Of a stretch of 32,000 nucleotides of DNA, positions 1 through 32,000 are shown in pieces. The stretch's first letter is position 1; every line of letters begins with the position of its first letter. The notes beneath the pieces are model-generated. The model did no database searches. It was not told the origin of the DNA and saw only the letters and a program-made list of their open reading frames with translations. Origin of the DNA: Paramicrosporidium saccamoebae KSL3 (Eukaryota; Fungi; Cryptomycota); assembly GCA_002794465.1 (NCBI GenBank), contig MTSL01000050.1, positions 3,164 to 35,163 on the forward strand, written 5' to 3'. The position numbers were made by a program, and so were the translations under genes.

Positions 1-3000
1 GGCGTTCATCTAGCAATGCTACTGACAATTGATGAACATCGCGTCCACAGGCAGAGGCCGCAAGCATTGTTTGACCGACGCAAATTTTGCTATCAATGAT
101 AAAGGCTTTGGTCAACTCGTTAACTCTCTGAGATTCCGAACCACTTTGTTTTGCCAGGCTATCTGTAAGTGTATTCTTTTGTTCAAGGATATCTCTTTTG
201 CGGCATAGTGCCAAGTAGGAATTTTTCATTTTCAAAAGCGCACTTGAAAATGAACGCCCGTTTTCAATCGCTCCATGAGTGATCTTGCTAAATTTTGCTA
301 AGTCTGTCTGTCGTTGTGCGTGCACCTGAAGAAGTACTCTGCAAATCCGATTTGCCCGAATACACATGACCTGCACGCCCTCTCTGGCATGAGTAACTCC
401 CAGATGGAATCTTTTAATAAATGCGACCAGATCAAAGACTTGACACCACAATTTTCGAGCTCTGTCAATTAAAATTCTTACAGTGGGCAAAAAATTTGTC
501 ACTCGATCGGAAACACAAACTAAGCGACTGCCAGTTGTTTTTCTGTTAGCTTCAATCAAACTCTGTAGAGCCTGAGTCTTTGCAAAGATCATTCCAATAA
601 TTTTGGAGACCTTGGTCATTTTTAAAGAAGTAACCTTGATAGATTGAACATTTTCAGCATTCCGAGCATTTAGGCCTTTCATCATTTCTCTACTTTTGCC
701 AACAAATTCTCGGATGCTTGTGTGATTCAGATACAGCCGGTTAACAGACATTTTAAGCGCCGTCCGATCCTTTGAGCACCTGCATTCTATGGAGGTTCTT
801 GTTTTGGACTGAATGAGCGATTGACTAGCCAGTGATTCGTTTTCTTTCTTCAGGTCTACGACCCGTCCTGAGATGTCTGAGAGAAGGACGCTCAATTTTT
901 TAAACCTGCCAGATATTAATTCAATGTGGCTTCGTAGATGTGATTCTCGGATCTTATCTTTATGCGATTGTTTCAAGTCCGTAGCAATTTTAATCCATGA
1001 TCGGTGGAACAGCACAACCCTCTCTTCGCACTGCTTGGAATTATGATGAAGCTTATCCACAAATTCCGACAAACTGTGGTGTCGACTTTTTAGTGTAGAT
1101 AAAAGCAACTTGAATGACTCGATACAGTGAGAAGAATTTCTATGCATTTGGGATAGCTCTTGAATAAGTCTCAACTGAGAATCAATCCTTGTAGCGGCCG
1201 TTTGTGTCTCATTGGATTTTAGTATAACGAGATTCCGGAGAGAATTTACCAAGGTAATTGCTTGGACGGACTGGTTTTTACAGGCCGTGACGATCACACG
1301 CGATCTAGCTAGATCAACGCTTTGTGAAGAGTTATTTTTGGTTAGACACTCATTTTTTTGCCGTAGTACATCTATCACAGAACGATAACTAGATATCAGC
1401 TCGGTGGCTTCCCGGATGCACACAGCGATATTCTTGCAGGTCGCCCGATGGCGGGACTCGCGTGCAATTACTCTATCCCCACGTCCTTCCAATTGATCCT
1501 TGCATCTTATGATTGCAGCCAGCTGATCTTTGAGTTGGTGCATTCCAGATCTGGCGGTCTGAATAAAATTAAAAGTCAGTAAGCGTCTTAGCTTGTCAGC
1601 GGCGAGCAAGTTCTCGATAGTAGTATTCTTGCTCTGCAGACTTGCAGAAAGTTGCGGTAATTTTATCAACACGTTCGAGGCCATCCTCCATCGTTTTTCA
1701 GCCGCGTCATTCTGTGCATGGTGCTCTTCTGATAACTTTTGTAAATGGCCTACGCTCGACAGTAGTCCTTTAATGACTTTTTGTGATTTTTCATCCTTAG
1801 ATCGACTCAGAGATTTTAACGCAACTAGTTTTTCAAGGTCATATTGGAGACGCTTCACAGAGCCATCTAGCAATTCCTTCCACTTAATAGAGTTTCTGGA
1901 TTCAGTTGAAGATGATATAACATCACGACGATCTGCATACTCAAGATCTCGGATCCTGGCCTCCTCGAGTGCTCTGAGTCGGCAAGTTTTTTCATCCATC
2001 TGCTTCGAATGCGCCTTGTATACCATTTTCATCGTTTGAACTAATTCTGAACACTTTAAAAGCTGCTGATACAGCATGAAATAGTTCCTTTGTGAGCGGA
2101 ACTTGCGATTTTTGCAAAATTCCTGCAGGGTCCTATATTTGTCGACCATTCCAGCCGTCGTTTGCATGAGCCGCCTTTCCCGGATAGAAATATTTGAGAC
2201 AAACAAAACATACTTGTTTCGAGACTCGAGGGCCGCAAATTGAAAGTAATCCCGCTGCTTTGTCATAGAAGCAAGACTTTTCTCCATGCGGTCTCTGTCG
2301 TAAATTGCATCGTCCAGTTCGAGTTGCAGATCGTCAATCCAATCACATGTCCGCTGATCGTCCTCTGTGTTTGATCCCGGATATTTGATTTCCTTCTGCT
2401 TTTGCAAATCAGTAAAGTCTTTGCAACATTTTGAAATCTTTTCCGCCAGAATACTTTGTCGATCACGCATCGGCGCCAGTGTCCTTAGACTGTTCGTGAT
2501 ATACGCCATTTGTCGGGCAACAAGGCTTTGAGTTTTCAGGTTGATTCGAGTTCTCGAGTTTGTTAAGCCTACTATCTTGGTCTGTGTATCTTTTAGAGAT
2601 TGTATGGCAGAAACGATGCCAGTGAGGAACTCGCGCTGACGTTGAATGCATTCTGTAGCGATTCTACTCGTAAAGTCGTCTTGAGGAGTAGTGGATTGGC
2701 TTTGGGCGGGATTCTGTGACCCACTTGCAATTTCAGGCATTTCCCTATCAGCTCTAACATAGCTGCTCCTTTCGCTTGTAGAATGCCGATATTTTCCAAG
2801 CAGGCTTCTCTGTTTGCAGAGAGACTCTCTAGACCTTTCCAATTTAGTCACCATCTGCTCGAGAAGAGCATCTCGTTGATGTAAACCTAGAGCGCAATCT
2901 TTTTGTTTAGAGTTTATGGATACCATCTCTCCCTCGAGATTTTGCACTTTCATCATGGCTTCGTCCAGTCTCTCGATAAGTTGTTGCTTTTCTTGCCGTA

Positions 3001-3523
3001 TCATTTCGTCTTTTCTGTCACCCAGTTTGTGTAGTTCCTGAATTTGCCGAGTTGCCTTCTCCAGCTCGATGTCAAGTAGCTCTTTGGAATGAAGAGACTG
3101 TTCAGCAATAATTGTATTTGCCCTCCGTTCTTGATTTATTTCTTGATGAACACTATGCATATCTTCAATGCATTTTCGGGACTTCAATAGTTGAGTTAGT
3201 AGTCTCCGATTTACAGCATCCAGACTTGAGTATTTTTCGCGATATACGGCACTTTCTGACTGATTCTCGCGAAGCTTTTGGTTGAGGTCGCCAATACGTT
3301 TCAGGTAGATGCGGCACTTTTCCAGCTCCAAAGTTAGGGTTTTGTTCATTTTGATGACCTCTGGGTAACACAAGGGCCCCTCGGCGCCGCTTGAGGGAGG
3401 ATTCCAATGTTGCTGGATTGATTGCCGGCCCTGTGGACAGTTGACAATCTTCAATACAGCCTCCTCGACGCTTTGGTCACCTGTGACGTTTATGCGATCC
3501 AAAAAGTCGGCAAATTTGAGCAT
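1..3523 (-). CDS. Large orphan coiled-coil protein, at least 1174 codons, 3'-partial (continues past position 1), no intron needed
   Basis: I translated the minus strand by hand. One frame is stop-free from ATG at 3523 (MLKFADFLDRINVTG...) to the window edge. It has E/Q/K/L/R-rich helical segments (RIGDLNQKLRENQSE; RQEKQQLIERLDEAMMKVQNLE; WIDDLQLELDDAIYDRDRMEK). It is missing from the ORF track, presumably because no stop lies in the window. I recognise no family. Confidence 0.85.
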   Translation of the reverse strand, partial: MLKFADFLDRINVTGDQSVEEAVLKIVNCPQGRQSIQQHWNPPSSGAEGPLCYPEVIKMNKTLTLELEKCRIYLKRIGDLNQKLRENQSESAVYREKYSSLDAVNRRLLTQLLKSRKCIEDMHSVHQEINQERRANTIIAEQSLHSKELLDIELEKATRQIQELHKLGDRKDEMIRQEKQQLIERLDEAMMKVQNLEGEMVSINSKQKDCALGLHQRDALLEQMVTKLERSRESLCKQRSLLGKYRHSTSERSSYVRADREMPEIASGSQNPAQSQSTTPQDDFTSRIATECIQRQREFLTGIVSAIQSLKDTQTKIVGLTNSRTRINLKTQSLVARQMAYITNSLRTLAPMRDRQSILAEKISKCCKDFTDLQKQKEIKYPGSNTEDDQRTCDWIDDLQLELDDAIYDRDRMEKSLASMTKQRDYFQFAALESRNKYVLFVSNISIRERRLMQTTAGMVDKYRTLQEFCKNRKFRSQRNYFMLYQQLLKCSELVQTMKMVYKAHSKQMDEKTCRLRALEEARIRDLEYADRRDVISSSTESRNSIKWKELLDGSVKRLQYDLEKLVALKSLSRSKDEKSQKVIKGLLSSVGHLQKLSEEHHAQNDAAEKRWRMASNVLIKLPQLSASLQSKNTTIENLLAADKLRRLLTFNFIQTARSGMHQLKDQLAAIIRCKDQLEGRGDRVIARESRHRATCKNIAVCIREATELISSYRSVIDVLRQKNECLTKNNSSQSVDLARSRVIVTACKNQSVQAITLVNSLRNLVILKSNETQTAATRIDSQLRLIQELSQMHRNSSHCIESFKLLLSTLKSRHHSLSEFVDKLHHNSKQCEERVVLFHRSWIKIATDLKQSHKDKIRESHLRSHIELISGRFKKLSVLLSDISGRVVDLKKENESLASQSLIQSKTRTSIECRCSKDRTALKMSVNRLYLNHTSIREFVGKSREMMKGLNARNAENVQSIKVTSLKMTKVSKIIGMIFAKTQALQSLIEANRKTTGSRLVCVSDRVTNFLPTVRILIDRARKLWCQVFDLVAFIKRFHLGVTHAREGVQVMCIRANRICRVLLQVHAQRQTDLAKFSKITHGAIENGRSFSSALLKMKNSYLALCRKRDILEQKNTLTDSLAKQSGSESQRVNELTKAFIIDSKICVGQTMLAASACGRDVHQLSVALLDER

Positions 3524-3764
3524 TTGTTGCTTACTTGCCTCCCCTATGGCTAAATACCTGTTACACGAGGTGTTTATATGTATACGACTTTTGATTGGAT
3601 AATCTCATGAAATGTTTCTGCATGACCTAAACCAATCAGGCTGAATGGCAAGCTAAAATTCTCGTTTTGCAAGGCTTTGCCAAGTATGTAGCCGTATTAC
3701 ACTCTGAACATTTGTATGTGCCAAAGCGGCAAGGTTATGATGGTTATGGAGAGAGTATGAATGA

Positions 3765-4219
3765 TTAAAATTTAAGAGTATTTGGTTTTGAAGACGCTGA
3801 ACTTTCGTCACTCCAAAGATGACCACAAGACGAGTTGCAGCATACAAAATACAGCGTCATTGGCGTGTCTCTTCGTCTGTCATGAGATTGAAAGAACACG
3901 GCCTCCCCGAAACTGCATTGAGGACAGGGCCGTCGCGTCGTCCTCGGTAGAGTCGGATCTGCAGACAAGCCACTTACAGCATGTGTTCTTTCTCTATACA
4001 ATTATTTTGTCACAAATGGCAAGAGGTACAGAGGCTGCGAGATAATGTTGTTGCGATATACACAGTGTTGACCAGCCTCCTCTTGATGATCACAGTTTCG
4101 GCATGCAAACAATAAAACGCGACTTGCGCGGTCTTCCTTTGGATATAACATGTTGTTACTGAGGGTTACTGGAAAACTTAAAGAAAGTACCATTCAGGAC
4201 AGAACCTAATAGTAGACAT
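3765..4219 (-). CDS. RPB9: RNA polymerase II subunit RPB9 (128 aa, 3 exons)
   Basis: Exons 4219-4191, 4158-4030 and 3993-3765; introns of 32 and 36 nt. The spliced product reads [20 protein letters not shown]...ACRNCDH...DPTLPRT...CPQC...AVFFQS...[14 protein letters not shown], with both zinc ribbons. Confidence 0.97.
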
Positions 4220-6969
<2,750 letters not shown>

Positions 6970-12652: not shown

Positions 12653-13720
12653 TCATTCACTGCGTGGAATCGTTTCATTCTTAACTGGAAGATCCATTGT
12701 GTTCTGTAGATGCCATACCTGTGGACTTCCCCCCACTGAAAATTCTAAATCCTCTGTCGTGATCGAGTCCCAGAATTTGTAGACCATCATGACGGAGAGC
12801 AATATGAACATTGATCCGAGAAACATTCCATCAACATAGTGCACTGCAAAGCGACAGATGTGATTCGAAAATGCGAAAATGCAGGTTATTCCCATTCCAA
12901 AGAACATGAGTCCGAAGAAAATGTCACCAATCGGCCAGCGATCATGAAGAGTGTTAAGGACGAGAAAGATTTGAAGGATGACGTACAGCGCCAAGCAGGC
13001 CCCATTGAAGATGAACATGAGAATGTACAAGATCAGAGGGTTGTTGGGGTTCATTCCAGCTACTCCAAGGAAGGTTGCAATGGCAATAAAATACGCACCG
13101 CCTGCAAACAACAGCGACGCCATCCTAAAACTCTGCAAAATGAGTTACCATGACGCAATTCCATACCCAGACGCTGGCTTTTGTTCCGTCTTCGGCCCAT
13201 TGAAATCCAACGAATCCGTTCAACAGCAGGATTGAGAACGAGGCGGTAACAGCTGCTACATGTCCGGCTGCAAAGAACTAGAATAATTACATGTGGCCAC
13301 ATAAAGATGCACCTACCTTATAGAAGCCTACGGATATGGGGATAATATTTGTTGCCAATAAAAGTTCGAGCGTTACGGAAGCAGCATACAGATAGAAAAA
13401 TATGACCATCTCTTTGCGACCTACGCATATCAATTACAGTGTGCCTCCATACCCACTGCAGTATACTTGCTTTTGATGTGCATAATCATAATCAAGGTCA
13501 TCAGGAGGGCACAGACATCAACTGCCAACACGGCTAGGACTATTTAGCATTTGGACCAAAGGCAAATACATGGTTGGAATAGCAGAAAGTTTCTAATGCC
13601 GATATTTCGAGAATAACATTGAGGGTCGCCTAGGCCCAATGCTGGGCAGACTGTAAGAGAGGCTCGGTTGCAAATCCAAGCAAAGTCTCCAAAGCGGAAG
13701 CTGGGCGGGCTAGCAGCCAT
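12653..13720 (-). CDS. CHS7: Chitin synthase export chaperone Chs7 (about 308 aa, 5 exons)
   Basis: Introns 13569-13534 (or an alternative acceptor at 13540), 13452-13421, 13316-13278 and 13166-13133. The spliced product has FGDF..IC...PQCYSRNI, HIKSKYTAVGRKEM, LLLNGFVGFQWAEDGT, LHDRWPIGD, HYVDGMF and VYKFWDSITTEDLEFSVG, which are Chs7 family signatures. Confidence 0.93.
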
Positions 13721-14217: not shown

Positions 14218-15292
14218 TCACTCTATACCGCTACCTGGCTTCTTCATACTAGACTCTTTCATATATTCGTATCCAATAAAGGCTACCGAGGATACCGGTA
14301 CCCTTATTAGCAGTCGCGGCTTTAATCCTTTGTACAAGCCGGCAATCCCTTCCTTGACAAAGACCTCTCTCAGTAATTTCCAGTAGCCGCTCGACAAGGC
14401 CCGCTTATCGGTTCTTTCATTGACTTCCAACAGTTGAAGTCGCGTTTTGGCGACCTCCAGCGGATTCACTGCCACATAGCCGGCCGCTCCAGCAAATCCT
14501 CCGCTAACAAGGTGGGCCATAATCTTCAGACTGCCACCTTGATGATAACTTCCGGCATCTGAGACGTGGAATCCAGCCCACCGGTAGGCTTTAAAGATCA
14601 CTGACTTGCATGCCTCGTAGCTGGCCCACCAAACGGCCGATCCGGGCCCGTAAACCAATATGTAGGGTCCAAATCCACGGTAGAATCCCTTAACGCCCTC
14701 GGTCTGATAAATATGGCTGCAGATTCGGGATCCAGATGAGTTTATAGCCGAGTGGTGAGAGCTCATGGCCGATTGCACTTGAAGACGCTGAGTAACGATA
14801 TCAGTAGGCAGATAGGTTAGAGCTGCAGTGGCCTCAGACACGACTCCAGCGGTTGCATTTGACATGAATCCTACCAGTCAGATGGCTCCACCTACAAATA
14901 CCTAGGAAAGATGCCAGCCTAGGAGACGAATCTTTGGGTATTAACTTTCGAAGTTGCTCGTTTGTATATTCGTAGGAGGAATAGTATAGAAACTGACCTG
15001 GGAAGTGACCAATTGCATTGACACTGAATCCGCGGAAGAGACCTGTGGGTGTCAGAATTTATGCACGCTGCCTACCTCGGACTCCTTCACGTCGGAAAAT
15101 GTCCATAAGTAGTCGCCGCACACGAACCCGCCCTTGGTCCAATTTGTCAGCCTGTAGCCTCGTGGCTAGGAGGTCGGATGGATATAGAAGGAGGTCTACT
15201 GCGAGGACGTACATGGTGCTGTTTATCAAAAACGAAGAGCTATCCAAATCGCTCCATGTGAGGGAGTGCTTAGGATAGTGTTCATTCTCCAT
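14218..15292 (-). CDS. Mitochondrial carrier (SLC25 family, SLC25A44-like; about 336 aa, 3 exons)
   Basis: Introns 15075-15043 and 14901-14871. Three carrier repeats (YPSDLLATRLQ, LPTDIVTQRLQ, NPLEVAKTRLQ), each followed by EG..GL/FY(R/K)G. The subfamily assignment is tentative. Confidence 0.88.
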
Positions 15293-15454
15293 GCTCCCGG
15301 TGAACCGAAGAATCCCTGGGATGCGCCTGCGTCAACTTGGGTTGCTACACTTGTTGTTTAATAAATGTTCATCTTTCTGATCTTACACCTCATTTCGCGA
15401 ATAGGTTTGGGATGAATTACTGCACGAATCCCCGGCGGTGGTAGAAAACTTGCA

Positions 15455-16933
15455 ATGTGGTTGACCGGCCATTTCCGCAACAGGACTCCGCAACTCTTCA
15501 GGAGTACTCTTCTGGTAAAGAATCCAAGCTCGTTTTAATATGAAGGGCTTTTCGCAGCGTTGTGCGCTGTCGATTCATGAGCATCAGTCCATGGGACTCC
15601 TCGCAAAGTACGGGATTCCTGTCCCACGAGGCCAACTGGCAAAGACACCTGAAGAAGCCTATAAAATAGCCGAATCTTTTGGTACACCGTCGTGGCTGGT
15701 ACGTAATGATTAGAAGCTAATGATCTGGTGGTTAAGGCTCAGGTTCTTGCGGGTGGACGAGGAAAAGGAACCTTTGACAGCGGAGTTGTCGGCGGAGTGC
15801 AGATTGCCTCGAGTCCTGAAGAGGTGCGAGACTATGCTCAAGGGATGCTGGGTCGACGTTTAATAACCAAGCAGACTGGTGCTGCAGGAAGGCCATGCAA
15901 TTCAGTACCTCTCAACTTGCGAGCCATAGTCTATAGATTTTTATTGTCGAGAGGCTGTACTCGAGAAAAGACTTTTATTTGGCCATCCTTCTCGACCGTC
16001 ACTCAAACGTAATGGATGAGAGCTTGGTAGCAATAGTTTAGGGACTCACACTGATGGGAAGTCGACGCGGCGGAGTTGACATTGAGGCGGTTGCTGCAGA
16101 AGAGCCGTCAGCGATTATAACCACTCCGATTCCCCAAGGAGGTGCGCTCCACTGCACCCACTAATATATTTGTAGAGGTTGACAAGAATAGTCTCAAACA
16201 ATTCTTGGACAAGATGGGAATAAACCCCAAAAACACTGATGCAACCGTGGAAATAATCCAAAAGATGCTTCGTCTATTCCGCGAGAAAGATGCCACTCTT
16301 CTTGAGATTAATCCATTTGTTGAGACCTCAACCGGAAACATGGTCTGTTTGGACGCAAAAATCAGTTTTGACGACAATGCTGATTTTCGCCAGCCCGATC
16401 TCTTCTCCATGAGAGACCCGACCCAGGAAGATGCTCGCGAAGTACGTGCTGCCGAGCACAAGCTGAACTATATTGGGCTGGATGGCCACATTGGGTGCTT
16501 AGTTAATGGTGCTGGGTTGGCAATGGCGACTATGGACATTATCAAGTTGCATGGTGGAGAGCCCGCAAATTTCTTGGATGTTGGTGGAAGTGCCACAGCC
16601 GATCAGGTGGAGCAGGCCATTAGAATTCTGGGAGAAGATAGTACCGTAAAGGCTGTCCTTGTCAATATTTTTGGAGGCATTATGCGCTGCGACATTATCG
16701 CCGAGGGGATTCTGAACGCCGTCAAGTCTGATAAACTGAGGGTTCCGTTGGTTGTGCGATTGCTGGGGACCAATATGCAAGAAGCCAAAGAAGCGATTGC
16801 AAAGAGCAAACTTGAAGTTTTTGCCTGCGATGATCTTGACGAGGCTGCCAAGAAGGCCGTTTCTCTAGCGAAAATTGTGGAGCTTGCCGATTCGGCCAAC
16901 GTCAAAATCGTGATTGGAGATGCTAAGCAATAA
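15455..16933 (+). CDS. LSC2: Succinyl-CoA ligase beta subunit, mitochondrial (about 438 aa, 6 exons)
   Basis: Introns 15515-15545, 15682-15713, 15905-15936, 16009-16041 and 16142-16175. Exon 1 encodes an Arg-rich presequence-like peptide ([20 protein letters not shown]). Motifs [38 protein letters not shown] and [10 protein letters not shown] are present. Confidence 0.95.
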
Positions 16934-16984
16934 TGAGAGAGTAGGCGATTCAGGGATTCCAATAAAGGGACTATGTGCGAGTAT

Positions 16985-17101
16985 TGTCGCGTAGTGGGGA
17001 TAAATAGTATGATACACATCTCCCTGCCCTCAATACTCAGCAGAGCGATCCACTCTAGCACACAAATACCCAACTAATCAACCCTCTGCCTCTACGTCAT
17101 A
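16985..17101 (-). repeat. Dispersed intergenic repeat, copy 3 (117 bp, inverted orientation, internally deleted)
   Basis: The reverse complement reads TATGACGTAGA...TGATTAG...TGTGTGCTAGAGTGGATCGCT...CTGAGTATTGAGGGCAGGGAGATGTGTATCATACT...TTATCCCCACTACGCGACA. Both ends match copies 1 and 2, and two internal blocks are missing. Confidence 0.85.
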
Positions 17102-17283
17102 CAGGAACCGAGACCATGGTATGGAGCTAAAACCCTTAGTAAAAAAACCAAGTCTGTGTCACGGACCAGACCCTTTAATAAACATGAGGTTCCCAATCTA
17201 TAGCGTCATGCATTTATTGATGCCAGGGTGGAACGTTCGAGAAGAGAGGCCTGGTGCTATTGCAACACTCACTTCTCTACAAA

Positions 17284-18964
17284 ATGTCTTCTGTACAACT
17301 GCTGAACCCAAATGCGGACGTGGCTCGTAGAAACTTGGCATTACAGGTCAACATGAATGCGGCCTTGGGTCTGCAGAATGTCGTCAAGACCAATCTTGGG
17401 CCTCGAGGAACATTGAAAATGTACTATTTGCTGGTGTGGAATTTACCATTAGGCTTGTCAGCGGCTCTGGAGACATTAAGCTCACCAAAGACGGAAAAGT
17501 ACTGCTGCATGAGATGGTATCAACTTTGGGTTCAAACTAATTCCTCAGAGTATCATCCATCCCACTGCTGCCTTGATTGCCCGCTCAGCGACAGCCCAGG
17601 ACGATATTACTGGCGATGGCACCACAAGTAACGTCATCTTAATTGGCGAACTCTTGAAGCAGTCCGAAAAGTATGTATCAGACGGCCTTCACCCTCGTGT
17701 GATTACTGAGGGCTTCGAGCTGGCCAAGAAGGAGGCGCTCAAGTTTTTGGATGAATTCCGTATTGTCAAAGCAAACGGCATTGACAGAGAAACGCTGATA
17801 TCTGTCTCTCGTACTTCCTTGCGCACCAAGGTCCCTGTAGCCGTTGCGGATAATTTAACCGAGGCTATTGTCGAGGCTGTTTTTACTGTGAAAAAGGACA
17901 ATTTGCCCATCGATTTACATATGGTTGAAGTTATGAAGATGCAGCACCAGTCTGCCATGGATACCCGCTTGATTAAGGGACTTGTCCTTGATCACGGCGG
18001 CCGTCACCCCGACATGCCTAAACGCCTCGAAAACTGTTATATTTTGAACCTGAACGTGTCTCTGGAGTATGAAAAAACTGAGATTAACTCTGGGTTTTAT
18101 TATTCCTCTGCAGAGCAGCGCGATCGCCTTGTTCAGAGCGAGAGAAGTCACACTGACGCCAAAGTTCGACGTATTATCGAGCTGAAGAAGCTTGTATGTG
18201 ATGGAACCAACAAGTCCTTTGTGGTTGTCAATCAAAAGGGAATCGATCCCTTGTCACTGGACATGCTGGCTAAGCAAGGTATTATGGCCTTGCGGCGAGC
18301 GAAACGACGCAACGGCGAACGCCTGCAGCTCATATCTGGGGGAATAGTCCAGAACTCTGTTGAAGATTTGTCCCTGGATATTCTCGGATATGCTGGACTT
18401 GTCTACGAGCAGTCGATTGGAGAGGATAAGTATACTTTTATTGAGCAAGTTGCCAAGCCCCAATCTGCCACGATTCTCGTCAAGGGACCCAATCAGCACA
18501 CCATTATCCAGATTAATGATGCCATTCGTGATGGCCTGCGGGCTGTTAAAAATGCAATTGAAGACAACAGCGTTGTTCCAGGTGCTGGTGCGTTTCAAAT
18601 CGCTCTTCACGCTCGTCTCATGAAGTTCAAGGAGAGTGTCAGCGGACGTGCCAAGCTTGGTGTGCAAGCATTTGCTGATGCTCAACTTGTTATTCCCAAG
18701 GCGCTTGCCCAGAATGCTGGACTTGATCAACAGGATTGTCTGCTTCTCCTGCAAGAAGAATTCCAGAAAGGCCGCATTGTTGGTCTTAATCTGACCACAG
18801 GAGGTGTCCTTGACCCGCGTGCAGAGGGCATTTGGGACAACTATCGTGTTTTGAGACATTTGTTAAATGCATGCACCGTAATTGCCAGCAATTTGCTTCT
18901 CGTGGATGAAATTATGCGTGCTGGCCGTTCCAGTCTCAAAACTAACCCTGAAGGGGAGCCCTAA
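17284..18964 (+). CDS. CCT6: Chaperonin CCT/TRiC subunit zeta (about 538 aa, 3 exons)
   Basis: Introns 17421-17452 and 17517-17548. The product has [69 protein letters not shown] and VVPGAGAF. Confidence 0.96.
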
Positions 18965-19779: not shown

Positions 19780-22496
19780 TTATTGAAAAATATCTTGGTT
19801 TCCTGGTGCACCGCTCCGGGCAGTCAGTCGCCGAAGATCCTTTAGCAGGTTTCCGATTAGCAAATAATCCTCCTTGTCTTTGGTCGTAAGTGGCTGCAAG
19901 AGTTCGAATGAGGGCGAGGCGGCTGCGGAGAGGTGACGAATATCAACTTCTTTCTGCATAGAATCCGCCGATGAATGCCGTTCAATTGACAATAGGAGAA
20001 TTAGTAACACAGCCTCAATTGTCGTTAAATGGACTTTGGATGCAGACCTTTTGATCATTGCAATTGATCCATCCAGAATCGCAATTAGGAGACTTAATGA
20101 TATCATGGTTGACCGATTCCCACCATCCGTGGATTCATTGTTAAAGTTCAAAATTTGCACAGTCTGATCAGCAGAGATGCAAGTGGCCATCAAACGAACA
20201 CAAGTATTGATGATAGAGCTCACAGACTCGCACCATTCTCTTTCGGCAGAACTGCTTATTGTCCTCGTGAGCAAATGTGACAAAATAGACAGGCGCGCCA
20301 GACGAGTTTGAGGGGACGCAGTTTGTGCAAACAGCTGAGAGATTAGAGAAACAAGTTCAAGATGCTCGTCGCTAGATGGGAACTGCAACTTGAATCGTAT
20401 CAAGCTCTCAAACACTATTGATCGATTTGAGACGAGAGCTGAGACTGAATTGAAAATTACCCCCGTAGAGTCGGTGGCGAGGATGAGGAGCAGACGCGCC
20501 AACGGAAGGAGCACCAAATGCCAGCGATGCTCTGCAAGGGCCGCATTAGGGGATGTAAATTCCTGGGAATCGACAGTTCGATGCCAGTCCAAAACACGAA
20601 GGCCTACGATCGTGTCAATGAGGCCCGCTTCAAGCAAGCGTTCGCCTCCCAAAGGTTCAGAAGCGAGCTTTTGCAAAAGCGCAAATCGACTGCGCCATAG
20701 GAACAAGGAATTAAGAGTTTGACAGCTAGGATTGATGACGGAAATCATCGTATTGTCGTCGATGCGGACAGAAGCAACAAGATTCTTAATGTAGCCGATA
20801 CGAACAAGACGATCAATCGGCGATACATCAGGAATGAGACAAATCATGTCACGTAAAAAGGTAGTGGCCATTGTCTTCCAACCATCAGCGTCTACAGCGG
20901 GGACTACAGAATCCACGGCAGCAATTTCAATTAACCGAACATGCTCCTTGCTGAGAAGGCTCTTTAGAGAGGACAAGCCTGACGCGTCCTGGGACATGAG
21001 ATGCGATGCCTCGCAAATAACGGAATACAAGTAGCCCCGACAGGGGAGATTGGAGTCAGGACGGAGAATGCCCCTAATCGCACCCGCGGCCAGAGCTGAC
21101 ACTTCATCTCCCGATAGAATGGGTAATTCAGCAGAATCAACTCGACGGAAGAAGCCGCTGGCAATGGCCACGGACAGTGCGGCGCAATTTTCCAGAATAA
21201 CATGATCTGCGCTCTGATTTGCTTGCAACCTGCCAATAACGGGGACAATTGAAGTAACAAGGTGAGACTGAATGGAAAGGATGGCCTGGCGATCATAGGG
21301 AATACGATCAAGGGATGCAAGAACGAGCTGGGAAATCTTGGCATTGGCGCGGACCAAAGATCCAGCGGCAGAAACAATCTGATCGTGAACGACAGAAGGC
21401 AGCGCTGACAAGTACTCTGAAGTCAGTACCGACTCTACAGAAGACATCATCACTGCCACAAGCGACTGGCCGGCATCCAATGGAGCTTCAGCGGACTCTT
21501 TCTCGCCAATGGTTCCGCGGGCCAAGACCGTGGAGAGTTTTCGTGCATAGCTCCATGCACCTTCGGCCATTGACGTGTGCAAGTCGAGCATGGCGCCTTT
21601 GAGTAGAGCGGCTTTCTGCTGCATCTCCAAGATGGTATATCCAATATCGGTGAGATCTACTGGCTCACGAGCAACAAACACAAGTTGCTTTCTGAAAAAG
21701 TCTTCTTGATCACGGAGGTAATTTGCAGTGGCCCTACTAGTACGTGGATTTGACAGAAGCGCCACCAGCAGCTCATAGCATTTCAGGCCAAAACTCGGGT
21801 GATCCAGCGCAACGATTGGAGTTGAAGGATGTCCCAGTCCAAAGGCCAAAAGTTCAAGGACAAGATGAAGACAGCTAAATTGGACGCCCTCATGCGAGGA
21901 GGGATGCAATATGGTTGCCGCACACGTTGTCAAGGAAGGATTAAATCCCAAAAGATAATGTGCCAAGTTGTAGCCAGGTTTGGACACGTTTCGAATCAGA
22001 AAATCAACAATCTGCAAACGAACCAAATTGGAGAGACCAAAAGAGGCAATAAAGCCCTCTTCATCATGGGCACGTTCATGCCAGCCCCGCCCATCCCCAG
22101 AAATAAGCGAAACTTGTTCCGTTTCCTCCCGTTCAAGGCGTCGTACAAATGCTTCCATTATGGACGGCAGCTCACCTGCTGCTTCCAATATAGAGTACAA
22201 CTTGTGGGTCGAATGGGGTGTTGCAGCTGCAAAGACGGGCGAATCTGCCATGTCTGCGATTGCGTGAAGCGCGGCAACGCTTACTTCTAGGTTCTCGGGA
22301 TAGTCCACAAGACGGAAAATTTGGACGACTAAATCCCGGCGACTTCTTTGCAAAGGGTCGCTCCCCGTGGCTCCGTACAGGTCGAACGGTCCAAGAATTG
22401 AAAATATTCTACGCATGAATTATATGGTGCTAGTAGACATTACGTGTTCCAAAAATTGGTTCTCACATCCTCACTCATACTCTTTGTCAATGCCAT
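19780..22496 (-). CDS. NUP192: Nucleoporin Nup192/Nup205-like protein matching only the C-terminal half (about 893 aa, 2 exons)
   Basis: A 35-nt intron (22443-22409, GTAATG...TAG) joins MALTKSMSEDVRTNFWNT to IFSILGPFD in frame. YNLAHYLLGF...SCLHLVLELL...HPSFGLKCYELLVALLSNPRTSRATANYLRDQEDFFRKQL matches, from memory, the conserved mid-region of Nup205/Nup192. Confidence 0.78.
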
Positions 22497-22582
22497 TTCC
22501 CAGAGGCGACGACCTAGTCTGGGATTTCAAGCCGGGGCCCGCCAGGAGTGCCGTCTCCAGCAGTAGCACTAGCGCTTGCGCC
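22497..22582. promoter_or_regulatory. Probable bidirectional promoter region between the Nup192-like gene and RPB8
   Basis: An 86-bp, GC-rich spacer lies between divergent ATGs. This depends on the predicted Nup192-like start at 22496. Confidence 0.45.
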
Positions 22583-23047
22583 ATGACAGATTTTTTGCTG
22601 GACGACGTTTTTGAGATAACAGCAGTGGACCCTGATGGGAAAAAGTTTGACCGCGTCTCCCGGATCCAGGCCAAAAGTGACAACTATGACATGTCCCTCC
22701 TGCTTGACGTTAATGTCGAGCTTTACGCTCTCCAGAAAGCCCAGAAATTTACCCTCGTCCTTACCAAGAGTATAGCGTTGGATGCATCGGTGGGCGCTGA
22801 TGCTGCTTGGCGTTCAGATGCTGGCCCAACTTTGGCTGACAAGTACGAGTATGTAATGTATGGACGGGTTTTCAAGTTTGAGGACATTTCAACTGCTCGA
22901 ATGTAAGAGAATATTTCTTGGCTTAACCTCTCTAGGGCTGTTTATGTGTCGTTTGGCGGCCTGTTGATGCGCCTGGAAGCTGACCCGCGACACTTTTTGG
23001 AAATTACCATAGGCTCCAATATTTACTTGCTCATGCGCAAGGTTTAG
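22583..23047 (+). CDS. RPB8: RNA polymerase I/II/III shared subunit RPB8 (143 aa, 2 exons)
   Basis: Intron 22903-22935. The product reads MTDFLLDDVFEITAVDPDGKKFDRVSRI...LLLDVNVELY...LADKYEYVMYGRVFKF...VYVSFGGLLMRL. Confidence 0.96.
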
Positions 23048-23101
23048 AAACCCGTGTTCTTTAAATTAAATAAACAATTGTCCGTATCCAGCTGGGGAGT
23101 G

Positions 23102-25182
23102 ATGAGCAATGGTAGTGATGTTGTTGTGCTATTACCACATCTTAAAGCCTTAGCTGGCAACGGCAAGAGCCGTGGCCCTACCAAAGGAAAAACGGGCTAC
23201 ACATTCGATGAGCGTATGCTCTACCACCGTGATCCAGAGGACGACCACCCCGAACAGCCTGCAAGAATTGAGGGGATTCTGCAGCTATTCCAAGAACTCG
23301 GTCTGCTTGAAAGATGTATTCATATTGCCGCCGGTAAACTGCCAACCGAGGCGCTTCAAGCCGTACATTCCCAAGAGCTGTTGACGTTCATCGACCAACT
23401 TCCTGGTACACCTGTCGCGCAATGCTTACTCTAGGTACCAATATAGAGACTCTAGTTGAGGTTGTGAAAGAGATGGACTCGGTTTACCTATGTCCAGAAA
23501 GCGAGATTGCAGCAAAGGCGGCTGTCACATGCACAACTAAGATTGCCCGCGACATTGCTATGGGGAAGATTGGCAATGGTTTTGCATTGGTGAGACCTCC
23601 TGGACACCATGCGGAGCCTGACAAGGTACTCTTTCTTGTGGAGATGTAATTTTTAGGCAATGGGATTTTGTATTTTTAACAATGTTGCTGTGGCTGCAAA
23701 AGAGCTCCAGCGGCTTGGATTGGCGCGGAAGATTATAATATTGGATTGGGACATTCATTACGGCAACGGAACCCAAAAGATTTTCGCCTCTGATCCTGAT
23801 GTTCTTTTCATCTCGATTCATCGGTATGACGATGGGAAATTCTACCCAAGTGACGTTGAGGGAAGTCCAACATATGTTGGCGAGGCTTCTGCTTTGGGAT
23901 CCTCGGTAAATATTGGCTGGAATGGTCCTGGGGTTACGGATGCGGATTATGCGGCAGCATTTTCGCGAATCGTGATGCCAATCGCCGCGGAATTTAGACC
24001 CGACTTTGTCTTTGTCTCTGCTGGCTTTGATGCTGCCCAGGACGATCCTATCGGAGAATGTCTTGTAACTCCTAATGGATTTGCCCAGATGACGCATCAA
24101 CTGATGAGCCTTGCGGCTGGTAAAGTGCTACTTGTGCTTGAAGGAGGATATAATGTGCCTGTAATTTCTAACTGTGCCGTATCCTGTCTCAAGACTCTCT
24201 TGGGGGATCCTATTCCATATGTAAATACACAATCAAAAGCCACAGTCCCTTCAGAACAAGCCTCCAAGGCCATCTCTGCCACCATTAAAGCACAATCAGC
24301 ATACTGGAAATCACTCTATCCCAAGCATCATCAACTACGGGACGATTTTGGCGGAATAACCACACTACAACGTATGTCTGTCAACAGAGTGTTTACTTTG
24401 TAGGGGTAACTGATGTATATTGGGGACATTTATGCCTCCGAAAGTTTAACATGATTTCATTACCCATTGCCGATCCCGACTTGCGGAATTTTTTCAAGGA
24501 GCGCGTGTTCATGACCGATAATGTTCTCGAGAGGCCAGCGGGGATTCTGGTGTTTGCCCATGAGAGGTATTGAATCCTTGCTTTTTTGATTGTACATAGT
24601 GGAACTGTGTACAACAGCGCCTCGGAATCAAATATTGCCAACCTTCAGAACTCTATGTTGCATCAACCGTTCCAAGGATATATCAAAGAGGCTTTAAGGG
24701 ACAATTGGGCTGTCATTGATTTGCATTATCCAGCTAAAGAATGGACGCTGAAACAAACACAGACCGGATCTCCAAAAGACTTGACGCTTCTGAACGAGTT
24801 GATGTTGTATATATGGGACCATTTCCTTGTACTTTCAGAGTCTCCAGACATATTTTTCGTATCTTCGGGTCTTCCGTCTTATGCCGTATGCCACCTACTC
24901 GATCAAAGGGCGGTACAACACAGAGTCAAAGGAGTTGTGGTCATTTCTCCAACGCTATATCTGCCTGTAGCATCTTCGGACCGTTCCGAATGGTATGGGA
25001 GCAACTCTCTTGTTATTGTACCAACAAAGCGTCCCGAAGGAACACCGATCGCCACTAATCCGTCATTTGGGCGCTGTGTTTCGGCTGGCAGTGAGGATCC
25101 TGCAGAGATTGCCACCATCGTGGCGCAGAGTCAAAATAGAGTCTTTTCATTCATCGAAGAGCGGACGCGAGGAGCCTGTTAA
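23102..25182 (+). CDS. HDA1: Class II histone deacetylase Hda1/Clr3 with C-terminal Arb2-like domain (about 651 aa, 5 exons)
   Basis: Introns 23406-23434, 23626-23656, 24372-24403 and 24567-24599. Motifs HPEQPARI, RPPGHHA, MGFCIFNN, DWDIH, SAGFDA and LEGGY are present. The C-terminal domain (WAVID...IWD) is consistent with Arb2. Confidence 0.92.
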
Positions 25183-28878: not shown

Positions 28879-29215
28879 TACGCCTGCGCCGCTCCTAAAT
28901 AGCTCTAAGAATACATTCATGTTACAGTATTACGGCGTATTGATAGTGGTGTTAGATTAGAGTGCAGTAGAGTGGGGTGGTTGTGTGATAAAGCCAGCTG
29001 GAAACGACCACCACTGGTACCTTCAATATGAAAAGTTTCATGGTCTGCAGGGATCGACATGCGCGCACTTTGGTTGTGTTATATTATTCCAAAGACTATT
29101 AATACACAGATTGACAGTCGACAAGTTTATTCTCACCCAAAACAAATATGGGTGATTTTCGGTGCTAATTTCGGCTACGGAACAAGGCGTATAGCCCCTT
29201 GCAAGACGTGCAGTA

Positions 29216-29460
29216 ATGGTAAAGGCTACGAAGGGCCTTTTAGTAAACTGGTATTACTTCATCTATTTTCGATTCACTGCTATAGTGACGCGTCGGTTCG
29301 AGAGATATTGTTGAAATTGGACCAAAGCATGCACTTTATTATAGAAGACCTGGACTCGAATCACCTGTTTATTGAAGCCTCCCAGCTAGACAAGGTAAAG
29401 GCTGAATTAGAGAGGAAGCTAGCTGAAAACGTCTATCTTCCACCAGACACGGTAAAATAG
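29216..29460 (+). CDS. TFB5: TFIIH subunit Tfb5/p8 (69 aa, 2 exons)
   Basis: Intron 29251-29285. Spliced product: MVKATKGLLVNCDASVREILLKLDQSMHFIIEDLDSNHLFIEASQLDKVKAELERKLAENVY. Confidence 0.93.
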
Positions 29461-29518
29461 ACGTAATAGACATCTTGTACAGTTGCTATAACACATTTCC
29501 CATCCCAGGGCTATACTA

Positions 29519-29954
29519 ATGGGGCACGGACGTAAGCTCCAACGCGGATACGTCGAAGATGCAACACCCGAGCTAACAGCCGACCAGTGCATCGGCAAAG
29601 TCACCGAGCTACGCGGCAAAGGTATCGTCGCAGTCTTGATACCCAGCACTACGGCGTTACAGCCCTCCTTGGCCTACCTACCACCTCGCTTTCGCGGCGT
29701 TCTTTTTTTACGGCGTGGTAGTGGCGGTCTATGCTGCTTATCCTTTAGGCTCATATCTGGTTTTATCACCCATCGAGACTGCAGATTCCGAGCAAAAAGT
29801 ACAATGGACCATAGAGACGCTGCTACGACCAGACGACGTCAAGCAGTTAAGAAAGGACGGCGAGTGGCCGGTTATTTTTGATCCGCCTGTAGATAGTGCT
29901 GTGGCAGAGGATGACGAGAGTAGTGACTCTTGCGAGTCTGATGTAGACAATTAA
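29519..29954 (+). CDS. eIF1AD-like S1/OB-fold RNA-binding protein (134 aa, 2 exons)
   Basis: Intron 29718-29748 joins LPPRFRGVLFLRRG to SYLVL...KQLRKDGEWP plus an acidic tail. This is the pattern of the eIF1AD family. Confidence 0.82.
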
Positions 29955-29979
29955 TAGAAACCCATTTAATTAACCCACG

Positions 29980-32000
29980 ATGAGCATACACAGTCGTGAA
30001 TCAGCGAGCAAATCTCTCCTTGACAATGGCAATGACTCGGAAGATTGTCCTGATAACGACTTTAATTTATTTGACGCACATGAGGAAGGGAAACTGTTGC
30101 ATCAACCACATGCCACGCGTCCCGCTGGTTTCTTACTGGAACAGAGTGAGGAATATCCGATATGTGAATCGGCACCACCAGTTCCACGACGACCCCTAAC
30201 ATCTCTGGAGAGGAGGCCCTCATGGATCACTCAACATGATGTGCTTCCGATGGCAGAGATGGAGAGGCGGAATGTCGTGGAGAGGCAGAGGCTTCGGGAT
30301 GAAGTTGGGATCGATGCTACAAGCACATCCGAGTCTGTCCGACCCTTCCATCCATGGTCTTTTATCTCGCGCCTAGTCACCTTTCCTATTCCCGATATTG
30401 TCCTCACGACCCCATTCTTTGGAAATCTTGATCAGCCCTCAGATCGACAGGTCTGGCGAGAAAAGACTGCCTTTGTTCTCACTCTATTCTCATTGTGCCT
30501 CTGTGTTGTCCTAGGCGGGTACTATATTGGCTTTGTTGCGTGTGTGCCTCCACTGCGAATATCATACGCCCATTCCTCTTTACGGCACGCAATTCTAGTT
30601 AATGGCCGAGCATATAGAGGTACCGCAAACAAGGCCGACTTTGATCTCATTGGCGAGATTGCAAATTCTGAATTTCCTTCTGATATAAGCCGCTGTCCGC
30701 GTGGAGTCCCCAAGACTGCATATTGTGGCGGAAGATTTAATCGGCAATGTCGTAACCTGAAATTCTTGCACAACTACTATATTGGGACGGTGGCATTTCC
30801 TTGGGAAGCTGTCTCCAACAGTTCAAGCCTTATTGTGTATGGAGGAGCCATACTCGATATGGAATCTTACCTGCACCGCGATAAAGGGTTCATGGGAGAT
30901 GATGTCAATTCTTTTATTAGGTCTCATATCGGGAGGGATGTTTCTCGTTCTGTACAGATAAATGAACACATGGCGAGGAACATTGATTGCTTGACGGCAC
31001 TGTACCAAGTTGGCGTCGTGGACATGGTATCACTACCGTGCGCACTCTCTTATATTATTCTGAGCGGATTGCTGATGATTGCAGGATCCCTCACTGCATT
31101 CAAATTCTTTGCCGCTTTCCACTACTACATCACATTTCCTGCCCCAAGTTTGCTGAAGAACGAAAGATATATGCTTGTCCATCTCTCTTGTCAAGCAGCA
31201 AGTTCCGCACAGATTAGGAATAGTCTAGACTCGCTGACCCAGACGGACTATCCAGATTCAAAAATGGTAGCAGTCATTGTGGTCGGTGGAGAGAACCACA
31301 GTCTTGTATCACAATTTCAGAATTGGCTAGGCGTGTGTGATCTTCAAAGAAATCTTGCCGAAACAGATCTATATGCCTCTATGAGGGGGAATTGTCAAAA
31401 AACTGTCGTGTACCATGGCCGCTATAAGACTCGGGGACACTTTCTATCATCAATATTGATTGTAACAAGAGGTGGTTTCAAAGACGAATCCCTCAATCTT
31501 GGTTCATTAGACATGCTTCTCGGCATGCTTTCATCCTTAAGCCTTGGTGAAAAAATTTGCGACTTTGAATATTCAATATGTCGAGCCTTCAAGCAGCTCA
31601 CTGGCCAATCTATCGAATGCTGTGAGTATCTTTTGACTCTGGATGCCAGAGCTCAAGTCACTGTCGATAGTTTGCGCAATCTTGCAAATGCTCTCAATTC
31701 TCGTCCCGAGATTATGGCTGCTTGTGGAGGGGCCACATTGGTCAATTCCAGCTCTTCCCTTGTTGGTAGGTTCCAGAACTACGAGTATTTCAGGAAGCAG
31801 AGTTACACATTTATGTACGAATCTGCCTTTGGACGGTCGATAAACCTGTCTTTAAATTTTGCACTTTACAAACTACGCAAAGAAGAGGAGCTAATCCTCA
31901 TTCATCCTGCTGTTATCGGATCTCGTAATGAAGGCTTGGCTGATCCGATAACGGCGCTTTTACAACAATTTCCCACAATGAAGACCATCCATGTTCCCGG
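29980..32000 (+). CDS. Class IV (Chs3-like) chitin synthase homologue with degenerate catalytic motifs, 3'-partial
   Basis: Hand translation gives 673 stop-free codons from ATG 29980 to the edge (absent from the ORF track). Class IV landmarks: WSFISRLVTFPIPD, VWREK plus TM, LIVYGGAILD, IRSHIGRD, CLTALYQVGVVD, LDSLTQTDYPDS, EIMAACG, FQNYEY, YESAFG and FPTMKTIHVP. Confidence 0.88.
   Translation, partial: MSIHSRESASKSLLDNGNDSEDCPDNDFNLFDAHEEGKLLHQPHATRPAGFLLEQSEEYPICESAPPVPRRPLTSLERRPSWITQHDVLPMAEMERRNVVERQRLRDEVGIDATSTSESVRPFHPWSFISRLVTFPIPDIVLTTPFFGNLDQPSDRQVWREKTAFVLTLFSLCLCVVLGGYYIGFVACVPPLRISYAHSSLRHAILVNGRAYRGTANKADFDLIGEIANSEFPSDISRCPRGVPKTAYCGGRFNRQCRNLKFLHNYYIGTVAFPWEAVSNSSSLIVYGGAILDMESYLHRDKGFMGDDVNSFIRSHIGRDVSRSVQINEHMARNIDCLTALYQVGVVDMVSLPCALSYIILSGLLMIAGSLTAFKFFAAFHYYITFPAPSLLKNERYMLVHLSCQAASSAQIRNSLDSLTQTDYPDSKMVAVIVVGGENHSLVSQFQNWLGVCDLQRNLAETDLYASMRGNCQKTVVYHGRYKTRGHFLSSILIVTRGGFKDESLNLGSLDMLLGMLSSLSLGEKICDFEYSICRAFKQLTGQSIECCEYLLTLDARAQVTVDSLRNLANALNSRPEIMAACGGATLVNSSSSLVGRFQNYEYFRKQSYTFMYESAFGRSINLSLNFALYKLRKEEELILIHPAVIGSRNEGLADPITALLQQFPTMKTIHVP

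Follow-up and report, generated by a model that had tools for sequence, protein, structure and literature searches.

An uninterrupted chitin synthase-like gene of Paramicrosporidium saccamoebae that lacks the catalytic motifs of its family and is probably maintained as a pseudo-enzyme

The 32,000-nt stretch of DNA analysed here (the window) is identical, base for base, to part of contig MTSL01000050.1 of assembly GCA_002794465.1, and L001 denotes the stretch of that contig used in this work. Its source is Paramicrosporidium saccamoebae, which belongs to the Rozellomycota and lives as an intranuclear parasite in amoebae (genome paper, Quandt et al. 2017, PMC5701793; the accession series is also listed in PMC6690862). 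At the end of the window, on the plus strand (29980–32000), lies a chitin synthase-like (CHS-like) open reading frame (ORF). Its product very probably is a membrane protein descended from a division-2, most likely class IV, chitin synthase, which would neither bind UDP-N-acetylglucosamine (UDP-GlcNAc) and metal nor perform catalysis and which is maintained as a pseudo-enzyme. The scaffold is kept, namely a cytosolic N-terminal tail, a first transmembrane helix (TM1), an extracellular cytochrome b5-like CHS4 domain, a second helix (TM2), a glycosyltransferase domain of the GT-A fold and a C-terminal bundle of TM helices. The signatures lost are TxYSE, DG, NRGKRDS, DxD, CLPG, the ED loop, QRRRW and SWG.

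Catalytic motifs and family membership

The frame is open from the ATG at 29980, which is the first possible start because an in-frame stop lies at 29971–29973, to the last nucleotide of the window, a run of 673 codons with 0 stops. This agrees with the first-pass annotation of the window, an earlier reading of the letters by a model that made no database searches. On L001 the full ORF has 834 uninterrupted codons and ends at a stop 484 nt past the window end (L001 13424–13426). Disabling lesions further downstream had been named in that annotation as one sign of a pseudogene; there are none, and the frame stays open to codon 834.

Motifs were compared in two alignments, A1 and A3, the latter with 70 canonical division-2 synthases taken from an exhaustive HMMER search plus a second search. 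In both, the uridine-binding motif TCYSE is replaced in the window protein by SCQAA (31186–31200), and ADG, a form of the UDP-binding motif (A/S)DG, by VGG, so that the remnant VVGG (31279–31290) has lost the Asp. GNRGKRDSQ is changed to SLNLGSLD and CGETQ to CGGAT. VDADT, which contains the metal-binding D-A-D-T (DxD) motif, reads LDARA, and its remnant DARA (31642–31653) has lost the second Asp and the Thr. The acceptor or channel-entrance motif CLPGC has become NLSLN (remnant NLSL, 31843–31854). All of these remnants are on the plus strand. The degeneracy of the family 2 glycosyltransferase (GT2) motifs, which the first-pass annotation had reported, is borne out substitution by substitution in A1 and A3. 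It had also proposed looking for QRRRW and WG in the remainder of the gene: past the window end, QRRRW is replaced by HCHEM (within LHCHEM, L001) and DDFSWG by LRLDNV, with SWG gone.

The region of GEDR differs from the others in that the motif has been deleted rather than mutated. Here the window protein falls short of the canonical enzymes by about 15 residues, and the segment HxKNLLLLGEDRxL aligns to a gap in A1 and A3. The sequence GLADP (31933–31947, plus strand) adjoins this gap, and the ED catalytic-base loop is missing. GLADP had been read as a GEDR motif that lost its Glu and Arg and kept its Asp; in the alignments, however, this Asp lies upstream of the position taken by the catalytic Asp of GEDR and does not correspond to it. 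In a 2025 review, QxxEY, EDRxL and QRRRW are given as signature motifs of fungal chitin synthases, with the Glu of EDR binding the donor sugar and the Asp serving as general base (PMC12653383).

Not one of the canonical motif regular expressions, Q[RQ]RRW included, matches anywhere in the window protein. Structural landmarks of the family are nonetheless kept: WREK (30454–30465), LDSLTQTDYP (31225–31254), QNYEY (31774–31788), ESAFG (31819–31833) and FPTMKTIHVP (31969–31998). Every position given earlier, from SCQAA, VVGG, DARA, NLSL and GLADP to the landmarks between WREK and FP...VP, proved exact. At columns conserved in at least 90% of the 70 canonical enzymes, the window protein retains 59 of 160 residues as against 129–160 (median 157) in the canonical sequences, and the loss of motifs is for this reason far beyond chance. 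Judged by its sequence, the window protein cannot be a chitin synthase (EC 2.4.1.16).

Its origin within the family can nevertheless be traced. The Pfam profile Chitin_synth_2 (PF03142, cut-off 27 bits) scores 92.3 bits on the part within the window and 118.5 bits on the full ORF; canonical division-2 enzymes reach 725–933 bits, 6–8 times as much. The CHS4 profile (PF22997, cut-off likewise 27) matches between TM1 and TM2 with 47.6–47.9 bits (E = 2e-12; 47.9 bits on the full ORF). The protein has neither a myosin motor nor a DEK_C domain, its N-terminus being bounded by the stop at 29971–29973. PF22997 also exceeds its threshold in a Chs3 orthologue, and is below threshold or absent in the myosin-bearing class V/VII hits. 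In a neighbour-joining tree the window protein and its relatives, six degenerate sequences in all, are monophyletic and fall among the non-myosin set on a very long branch, with distances of 2.17 to class IV-type and 2.25 to class V/VII enzymes; this branch is too long for the tree to decide the class. The window protein lies about 2 substitutions per site from any canonical member, compared with 0.93 among the canonical members themselves. Membership in division 2 is certain, and a class IV (Chs3-type) origin is probable because CHS4 scores above threshold, myosin and DEK are missing and the distance to the non-myosin set is slightly smaller. The earlier assignment to class IV consequently holds as far as division 2 is concerned, and the class itself, given the near-equal distances, is only probable.

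A sequence search of the PDB with the window protein returned a gelsolin match only, which we judged to be due to chance. The same search with a genuine Chs3 orthologue found class I structures only (1e-15), in agreement with the review, which says that class IV is still without a solved structure (PMC12653383).

Orthologues and selection at the locus

An exhaustive HMMER search of 1.84e9 representative sequences gave three best matches, P0002, P0003 and P0004, which are 29–32% identical to the window protein (E = 1e-41 to 5e-57) and all fully motif-dead; the matches past these three are canonical enzymes, apart from truncated or partial ones. A word-indexed protein search, for which both the window protein and a four-orthologue alignment served as queries, found only the window's own deposited gene model, P0001, and no relatives. 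On the contigs of the relatives, which come from JGI metagenomes and SRA assemblies, the gene order is that of the window: Tfb5, EIF1AD-like, CHS-like, FDF/YjeF_N (opposite strand), DnaJ-TPR, Fpg, Myb, OGG/ICMT and dynamin, with Plus-3, HDAC-Arb2, Rpb8 and Nup192 upstream. Since gene order is conserved around the CHS-like gene, P0002, P0003 and P0004 are positional orthologues from at least three further uncultured Paramicrosporidium-like lineages. The gene is thus an old single-locus orthologue common to at least four genomes of the Paramicrosporidium lineage, motif-dead in all of them and with the ORF intact; six sequences from four lineages are single uninterrupted ORFs of 700–876 codons.

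One run, SRR28640814, contains two Paramicrosporidium-like genomes (contigs L005 and L007) with the same gene order, whose CHS-like proteins are 44% identical and whose neighbouring genes are 56–76% identical. The uncultured diversity of this lineage looks substantial.

The remnants of the motifs vary by lineage. DxD is found as DARA, NVGT or QGGT, the orthologues having INVGT, TQGGT and TQGGT in place of VDADT, and QRRRW as HCHEM, RCQLT, QTQEY or QAREY. Only 17 canonical columns are kept in all four lineages; they hold Cys, Gly, Pro, Trp, Arg, Lys, Leu and Ala and lie outside the catalytic motifs. As far as the alignments can tell, these lineage-specific remnants reflect released constraint and not a new conserved active site. 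This bears on whether the protein might still be an active glycosyltransferase that works with non-canonical residues, for example on another substrate or with another metal requirement. Reviews of pseudoenzymes point out that catalytic residues can at times migrate (PMC10211241); the model predicts the GT-A and TM scaffold confidently, some constraint persists on the GT2 remnant (dN/dS, the ratio of nonsynonymous to synonymous substitution rates, is 0.30), and P0004 has a partial nucleotide-binding set. Nevertheless, DxD, the ED base loop, QxxRW and SWG have been lost together in four lineages with different replacements in each, the 17 shared columns fall outside the catalytic motifs, and the ED loop is physically deleted from the window protein. 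We regard continued activity as very unlikely. The set in P0004, consisting of PCDEE, FDG and GHRGRQDS, is more of the nucleotide-binding motif than the other sequences retain.

Selection was measured outside the window species, as synonymous sites are saturated between the lineages and no dN/dS can be computed for it against its relatives. The closest usable pair, P0003/P0152 (L005/L008), is 90% identical and belongs to a sister lineage. In this pair the whole CHS-like gene has a dN/dS of 0.31 (bootstrap 95% interval 0.23–0.43), compared with 0.18 (0.11–0.28) for the neighbouring FDF gene and 0.15 (0.08–0.26) for the neighbouring DnaJ-TPR gene. By region, the ratio is 0.09 (0.03–0.26) in the extracellular domain, 0.30 in the GT2 remnant and 0.43–0.58 in the two termini, the value of 0.58 being that of the N-terminal region. 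The gene is under purifying selection that is about twice as relaxed as that on its neighbours, which fits the amino-acid identities between lineages, 28–30% for the CHS-like protein as against 45–66% for the products of the flanking genes. It evolves 2–3 times faster than these neighbours.

These measurements speak against a decaying pseudogene, that is, a former chitin synthase that drifts neutrally and whose frame is still open by chance. Such decay would account for the loss of all catalytic motifs, the two- to threefold faster evolution, the 15-residue deletion at the ED loop and the disappearance of the extracellular domain from one lineage, and one very close pair (98% identical, with few differences) gives a dN/dS of 0.74–0.98. 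A 2.5-kb frame could not, however, have stayed open under neutral drift in four lineages with saturated synonymous sites: hundreds of stops and frameshifts would be expected where six sequences have open frames of 700–876 codons. The upper bootstrap bound of 0.43 for the whole gene, the ratio of 0.09 in the extracellular domain, the conserved synteny and the retention of all invariant residues of the extracellular domain likewise oppose it, and we find this explanation barely credible. The first-pass annotation had argued for a protein kept in a non-catalytic capacity as opposed to a decaying gene, with dN/dS against orthologues as the measure. Its view is supported by the combination of complete motif loss, syntenic intact ORFs in three further lineages and a dN/dS of 0.31, with an interval below 1 in the sister-lineage pair.

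Domain layout, shifted constraint and possible roles

All segments of the window protein are encoded on the plus strand. The weakly conserved N-terminal cytosolic region (residues 1–164; 29980–30471; A1) holds a stretch shared with P0004, RPSWITQHDV...ERQRLRDE, and has WREK just before TM1. TM1 is predicted at residues 165–183 (30472–30528) from hydropathy and is a helix in the AlphaFold2 (AF2) model. The extracellular or luminal domain follows (residues 184–348; 30529–31023) and has 5 Cys as well as an N280-S-S sequon. The Pfam CHS4 domain (30790–31017; 2e-12), which has a cytochrome b5-like fold, makes up its C-terminal half. TM2 is predicted by hydropathy and AF2 at about residues 349–377 (31024–31110). 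From residue 393 onward (31156–32000 in the window) extends the degenerate GT2 (GT-A) domain with its scaffold kept, the Pfam match covering residues 393–637 in the window part and 393–802 in the full ORF. Three more helices are predicted by hydropathy at residues 714–794.

The AF2 model was built from a 76-sequence alignment with P0001 as the first row, so that model residues 1–230 and 1065–1103 are irrelevant here. Over the CHS-like part it is confident, with a predicted local distance difference test score (pLDDT) mostly of 85–97, and Foldseek matches it to hyaluronan, chitin and cellulose synthases (E = 1e-14 to 1e-6). The model says only that the scaffold would be compatible with the family fold. 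Modelled alone, the extracellular domain gives a pLDDT of 88.7 and a predicted template-modelling score (pTM) of 0.83, and its C-terminal 85 residues match cytochrome b5 with Foldseek template-modelling scores of 0.65–0.71 normalised to the target. An alignment of the extracellular domains of 20 division-2 synthases (A4) contains a second, more N-terminal element, I-x-G-x-x-Y, that resembles the start of the b5 fold, and the domain may accordingly consist of two b5-like units in degenerate tandem. In all A4 sequences, the canonical ones included, FLG or FMG stands in place of the haem-ligand motif HPGG.

The extracellular domain is also where constraint is now strongest, a point absent from the first-pass annotation. 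Of the canonical columns it keeps 7 of 7 where conservation is at least 90% and 15 of 19 where it is at least 70%; the corresponding fractions for the GT2 core are 38/125 and 58/200. Among canonical enzymes the order is reversed: in two test pairs the second half of GT2 is the most conserved region (62–80% identity) and the extracellular domain is among the least (22–27%). The window protein and P0002/P0003 are 39–41% identical in the extracellular domain and 18–24% in GT2; between P0003 and P0002 these values are 60% and 42–44%. The C-terminal TM bundle is weakly conserved, at 17–23% identity. Constraint has thus moved from the former active site to the extracellular b5-like domain, and the conservation profile is inverted with respect to that of canonical synthases. 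Such a signature is clear enough to be searched for elsewhere.

A working scheme can be built on this layout. The pseudo-enzyme would reach the plasma membrane or the forming spore wall by the secretory pathway of class IV synthases, and would act there through its extracellular b5-like domain and membrane scaffold while polymerising no chitin itself. Its most likely role would be that of a non-catalytic partner or organiser of one or more active chitin synthases or of wall assembly, and alternatively it might serve as a ligand- or wall-binding receptor. We would give about equal weight to partnership with an active synthase and to binding by the extracellular domain.

The first of these, which was the leading idea of the first-pass annotation, joins the protein, as the non-catalytic subunit, to an intact class IV synthase in a heterodimer, both sharing Chs7-dependent export from the endoplasmic reticulum. 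The solved chitin synthases are dimers; ScChs3 dimerises and requires Chs7 (PMC12653383). The membrane scaffold is retained according to the model, a Chs7 gene is present, and the genome paper reports three CHS-domain genes for P. saccamoebae (PMC5701793). Against these points, the region that mediates dimerisation of Chs3, the N-terminal one, is the least constrained (dN/dS 0.58), the C-terminal TM bundle is poorly conserved, and an active partner was not retrieved from P. saccamoebae. The location of Chs7 is uninformative: it lies 17 kb and about nine genes from the CHS-like ORF with unrelated genes between, and its proximity was rejected as a sign of functional linkage. The heterodimer is therefore a possibility that we hold tentatively.

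In the second, the extracellular b5-like domain would serve as a receptor or anchor that faces the wall, a ligand or the host, and the dead GT2 and TM regions as its membrane and trafficking chassis. No other region is as conserved or as constrained as this domain, its b5-like fold is predicted confidently and it has conserved cysteines and a glycosylation sequon. In the AlphaFold model of ScChs3 the glycosylated extracellular N-terminal domain is seen as placed for molecular interactions (PMC12653383). The continued constraint on the GT2 remnant and the intact ORF of P0004, which has no such domain at all, speak against it. We also know of no ligand for the extracellular domain of any chitin synthase. 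We hold a receptor or anchor function just as tentatively as the heterodimer. A more specific version, in which a long-kept pseudo-chitin-synthase with the extracellular domain as its working part acts as a surface receptor or organiser that times or places the spore wall, or senses the environment of the host nucleus, seems to us rather doubtful.

In P0004 (L002/L003/L004 10001–12103) the whole extracellular CHS4/b5-like domain has been deleted in frame, and TM1 nearly abuts TM2; the identical protein is found in three independent assemblies.

Several observations weigh against a maintained pseudo-enzyme of the kind proposed. At 22–27% identity single residues may be misaligned, a caveat offset by the finding that no motif string occurs anywhere in the window protein. 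The confident AF2 fold is not independent evidence because the alignment behind it is dominated by canonical enzymes. The loss of the extracellular domain from P0004, on which the three assemblies agree, means that this domain cannot be indispensable in every lineage, and the N-terminal tail, which dimerises in ScChs3, is poorly conserved in the window protein. The dN/dS estimate comes from the orthologous lineage P0003/P0152 and not from P. saccamoebae itself, and the high ratio of the 98%-identical pair is noisy. Finally, a search that used the canonical enzyme P0005 as query yielded 120 class IV enzymes from fungi, none of them from the P. saccamoebae genome, and cluster and contig look-ups of the closest canonical matches led to chytrids, Blastocladiella and unrelated SRA samples and to no intact P. 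saccamoebae paralogue. Because no intact paralogue was retrieved, the sole indication of a partner synthase is the number of CHS-domain genes, three, given in the genome paper.

That count has a meaning of its own. The genes are listed as PSACC_00558, PSACC_00865 and PSACC_01336, and the passages covered of the genome paper, a study that also generated RNA-seq data, make no mention of motif loss (PMC5701793); neither sequences nor identifiers are given in the supplements of Torruella et al. Numbers of chitin synthase genes are used to draw conclusions about the evolution and cell-wall biology of Rozellomycota, Microsporidia and early fungi, and if the CHS-like locus is among the three, the functional capacity of P. 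saccamoebae has been overstated. The locus is also a natural experiment in that it separates class IV catalysis from whatever the b5-like extracellular domain and the membrane scaffold do. To our knowledge no role has been assigned to the extracellular b5-like domain of class IV synthases. If a pseudo-synthase driven by this domain is real, it would offer a first way into the function of this enigmatic domain in class IV synthases as a whole.

Neighbouring genes and known systems

The deposited gene model for this locus, P0001 (1103 aa; window 29059–32000, L001 10001–13603), merges three genes that stand separate in relatives. These are Tfb5 (29059–29460, plus strand; Pfam Tfb5, 8e-16), an EIF1AD-like gene with an eIF-1a domain (29519–29950, plus strand; 45% identity, 1e-31, to the separate eIF-1a gene of the relative's contig L002) and the CHS-like ORF. 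Splicing also gives the model a C-terminal extension, which overlaps the following gene, encoded on the opposite strand. The fusion of Tfb5 with the CHS-like ORF is a wrong gene model. A Pfam scan of the mis-spliced EIF1AD part of P0001 found no domain, and EIF1AD was identified by direct comparison with the relative's gene. P0001 splices out a stretch that codes in the relative. Relative to the L002 orthologue, the reading frame of the EIF1AD-like gene shifts after ...FLRRG, which could reflect a short intron, a frameshift or an assembly error. For the CHS-like ORF, an artefact of wrong frame or assembly was considered and rejected, both Pfam domains lying in one frame and that frame being confirmed in five other assemblies.

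Further models on L001 appear to be fused in the same manner: Rpb8 with HDAC-Arb2 (3432–6124; window 22490–25182), zf-CCHC/TPR/DnaJ with a homeodomain protein (14752–18438), OGG with ICMT/PEMT (21149–22860) and dynamin with Peptidase_C12 (22947 onward). All are separate genes on the relatives' contigs, and the P. saccamoebae annotation may merge genes systematically in this compact genome.

Elsewhere in the window, the Chs7 chitin synthase export chaperone, which had also been recognised earlier, is represented by its 3′ exon on the minus strand (12653–13138; PF12271, 5.2e-43, profile positions 151–286). The gene is apparently intron-split and extends upstream to about 13700, and the 3′ exon alone was scored. 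A 1201-codon open frame (2–3604, minus strand) that runs off the window start encodes a coiled-coil-like sequence rich in Gln, Glu, Lys, Leu, Arg and Ser. A DEAH-box helicase (DEAD, Helicase_C, HA2 and OB_NTP_bind) is spread over three ORFs at 4275–6969 (plus strand) and is presumably intron-split.

Among known systems the nearest are the class IV synthases, such as S. cerevisiae Chs3 and its Eremothecium orthologue P0227. In them, as in the window protein, PF03142 and PF22997 are arranged identically and myosin and DEK domains are missing; the predicted topology from the cytosolic N-terminus to the C-terminal TM bundle and the invariant Cys, Trp, Asp and Gly of the extracellular domain are shared as well. 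In contrast to them, the window protein has none of the catalytic and translocation motifs, has its ED loop deleted and scores 6–8 times lower on PF03142. Its N-terminal tail is much shorter (164 aa), its extracellular domain is conserved above the GT2 core, and its distance is about 2 rather than 0.93 substitutions per site.

Resemblance to the wider group of processive GT2 synthases (Chlorella virus and Xenopus hyaluronan synthases, CaChs2, ScChs1, PsChs1, BcsA and plant CesA) is structural. The predicted GT-A domain and TM channel superpose on these enzymes with template-modelling scores of 0.5–0.57 normalised to hyaluronan synthase, but identity is 10–13% and the window protein is without the active-site D, DxD, ED and QxxRW.

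A full-text literature search for chitin synthase together with pseudoenzyme gave nothing relevant, and in the literature covered we found no description of a dead division-2 or class IV synthase, nor of one in the Rozellomycota. The statement in the first-pass annotation that no case had been described is nevertheless wrong for the family at large. According to PMC3419747, which cites Martin-Garcia et al. 2003 and 2006, S. pombe Chs2p is chitin synthase-like and has no such activity, and it links the contractile ring to the membrane and is involved in septum and actomyosin-ring integrity. As a synthase homologue retained as a non-catalytic membrane protein, Chs2p is a precedent for the kind of protein proposed here. 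We take Chs2p to be a division 1 protein (Chitin_synth_1 type) without an extracellular b5-like domain; the window protein belongs to division 2 (PF03142, PF22997), and the resemblance is one of function and not of membership. If Chs2p is of division 1, activity was lost independently in the two proteins, and pseudo-enzymes among the processive GT2 synthases, so far represented by Chs2p, would extend to division 2.

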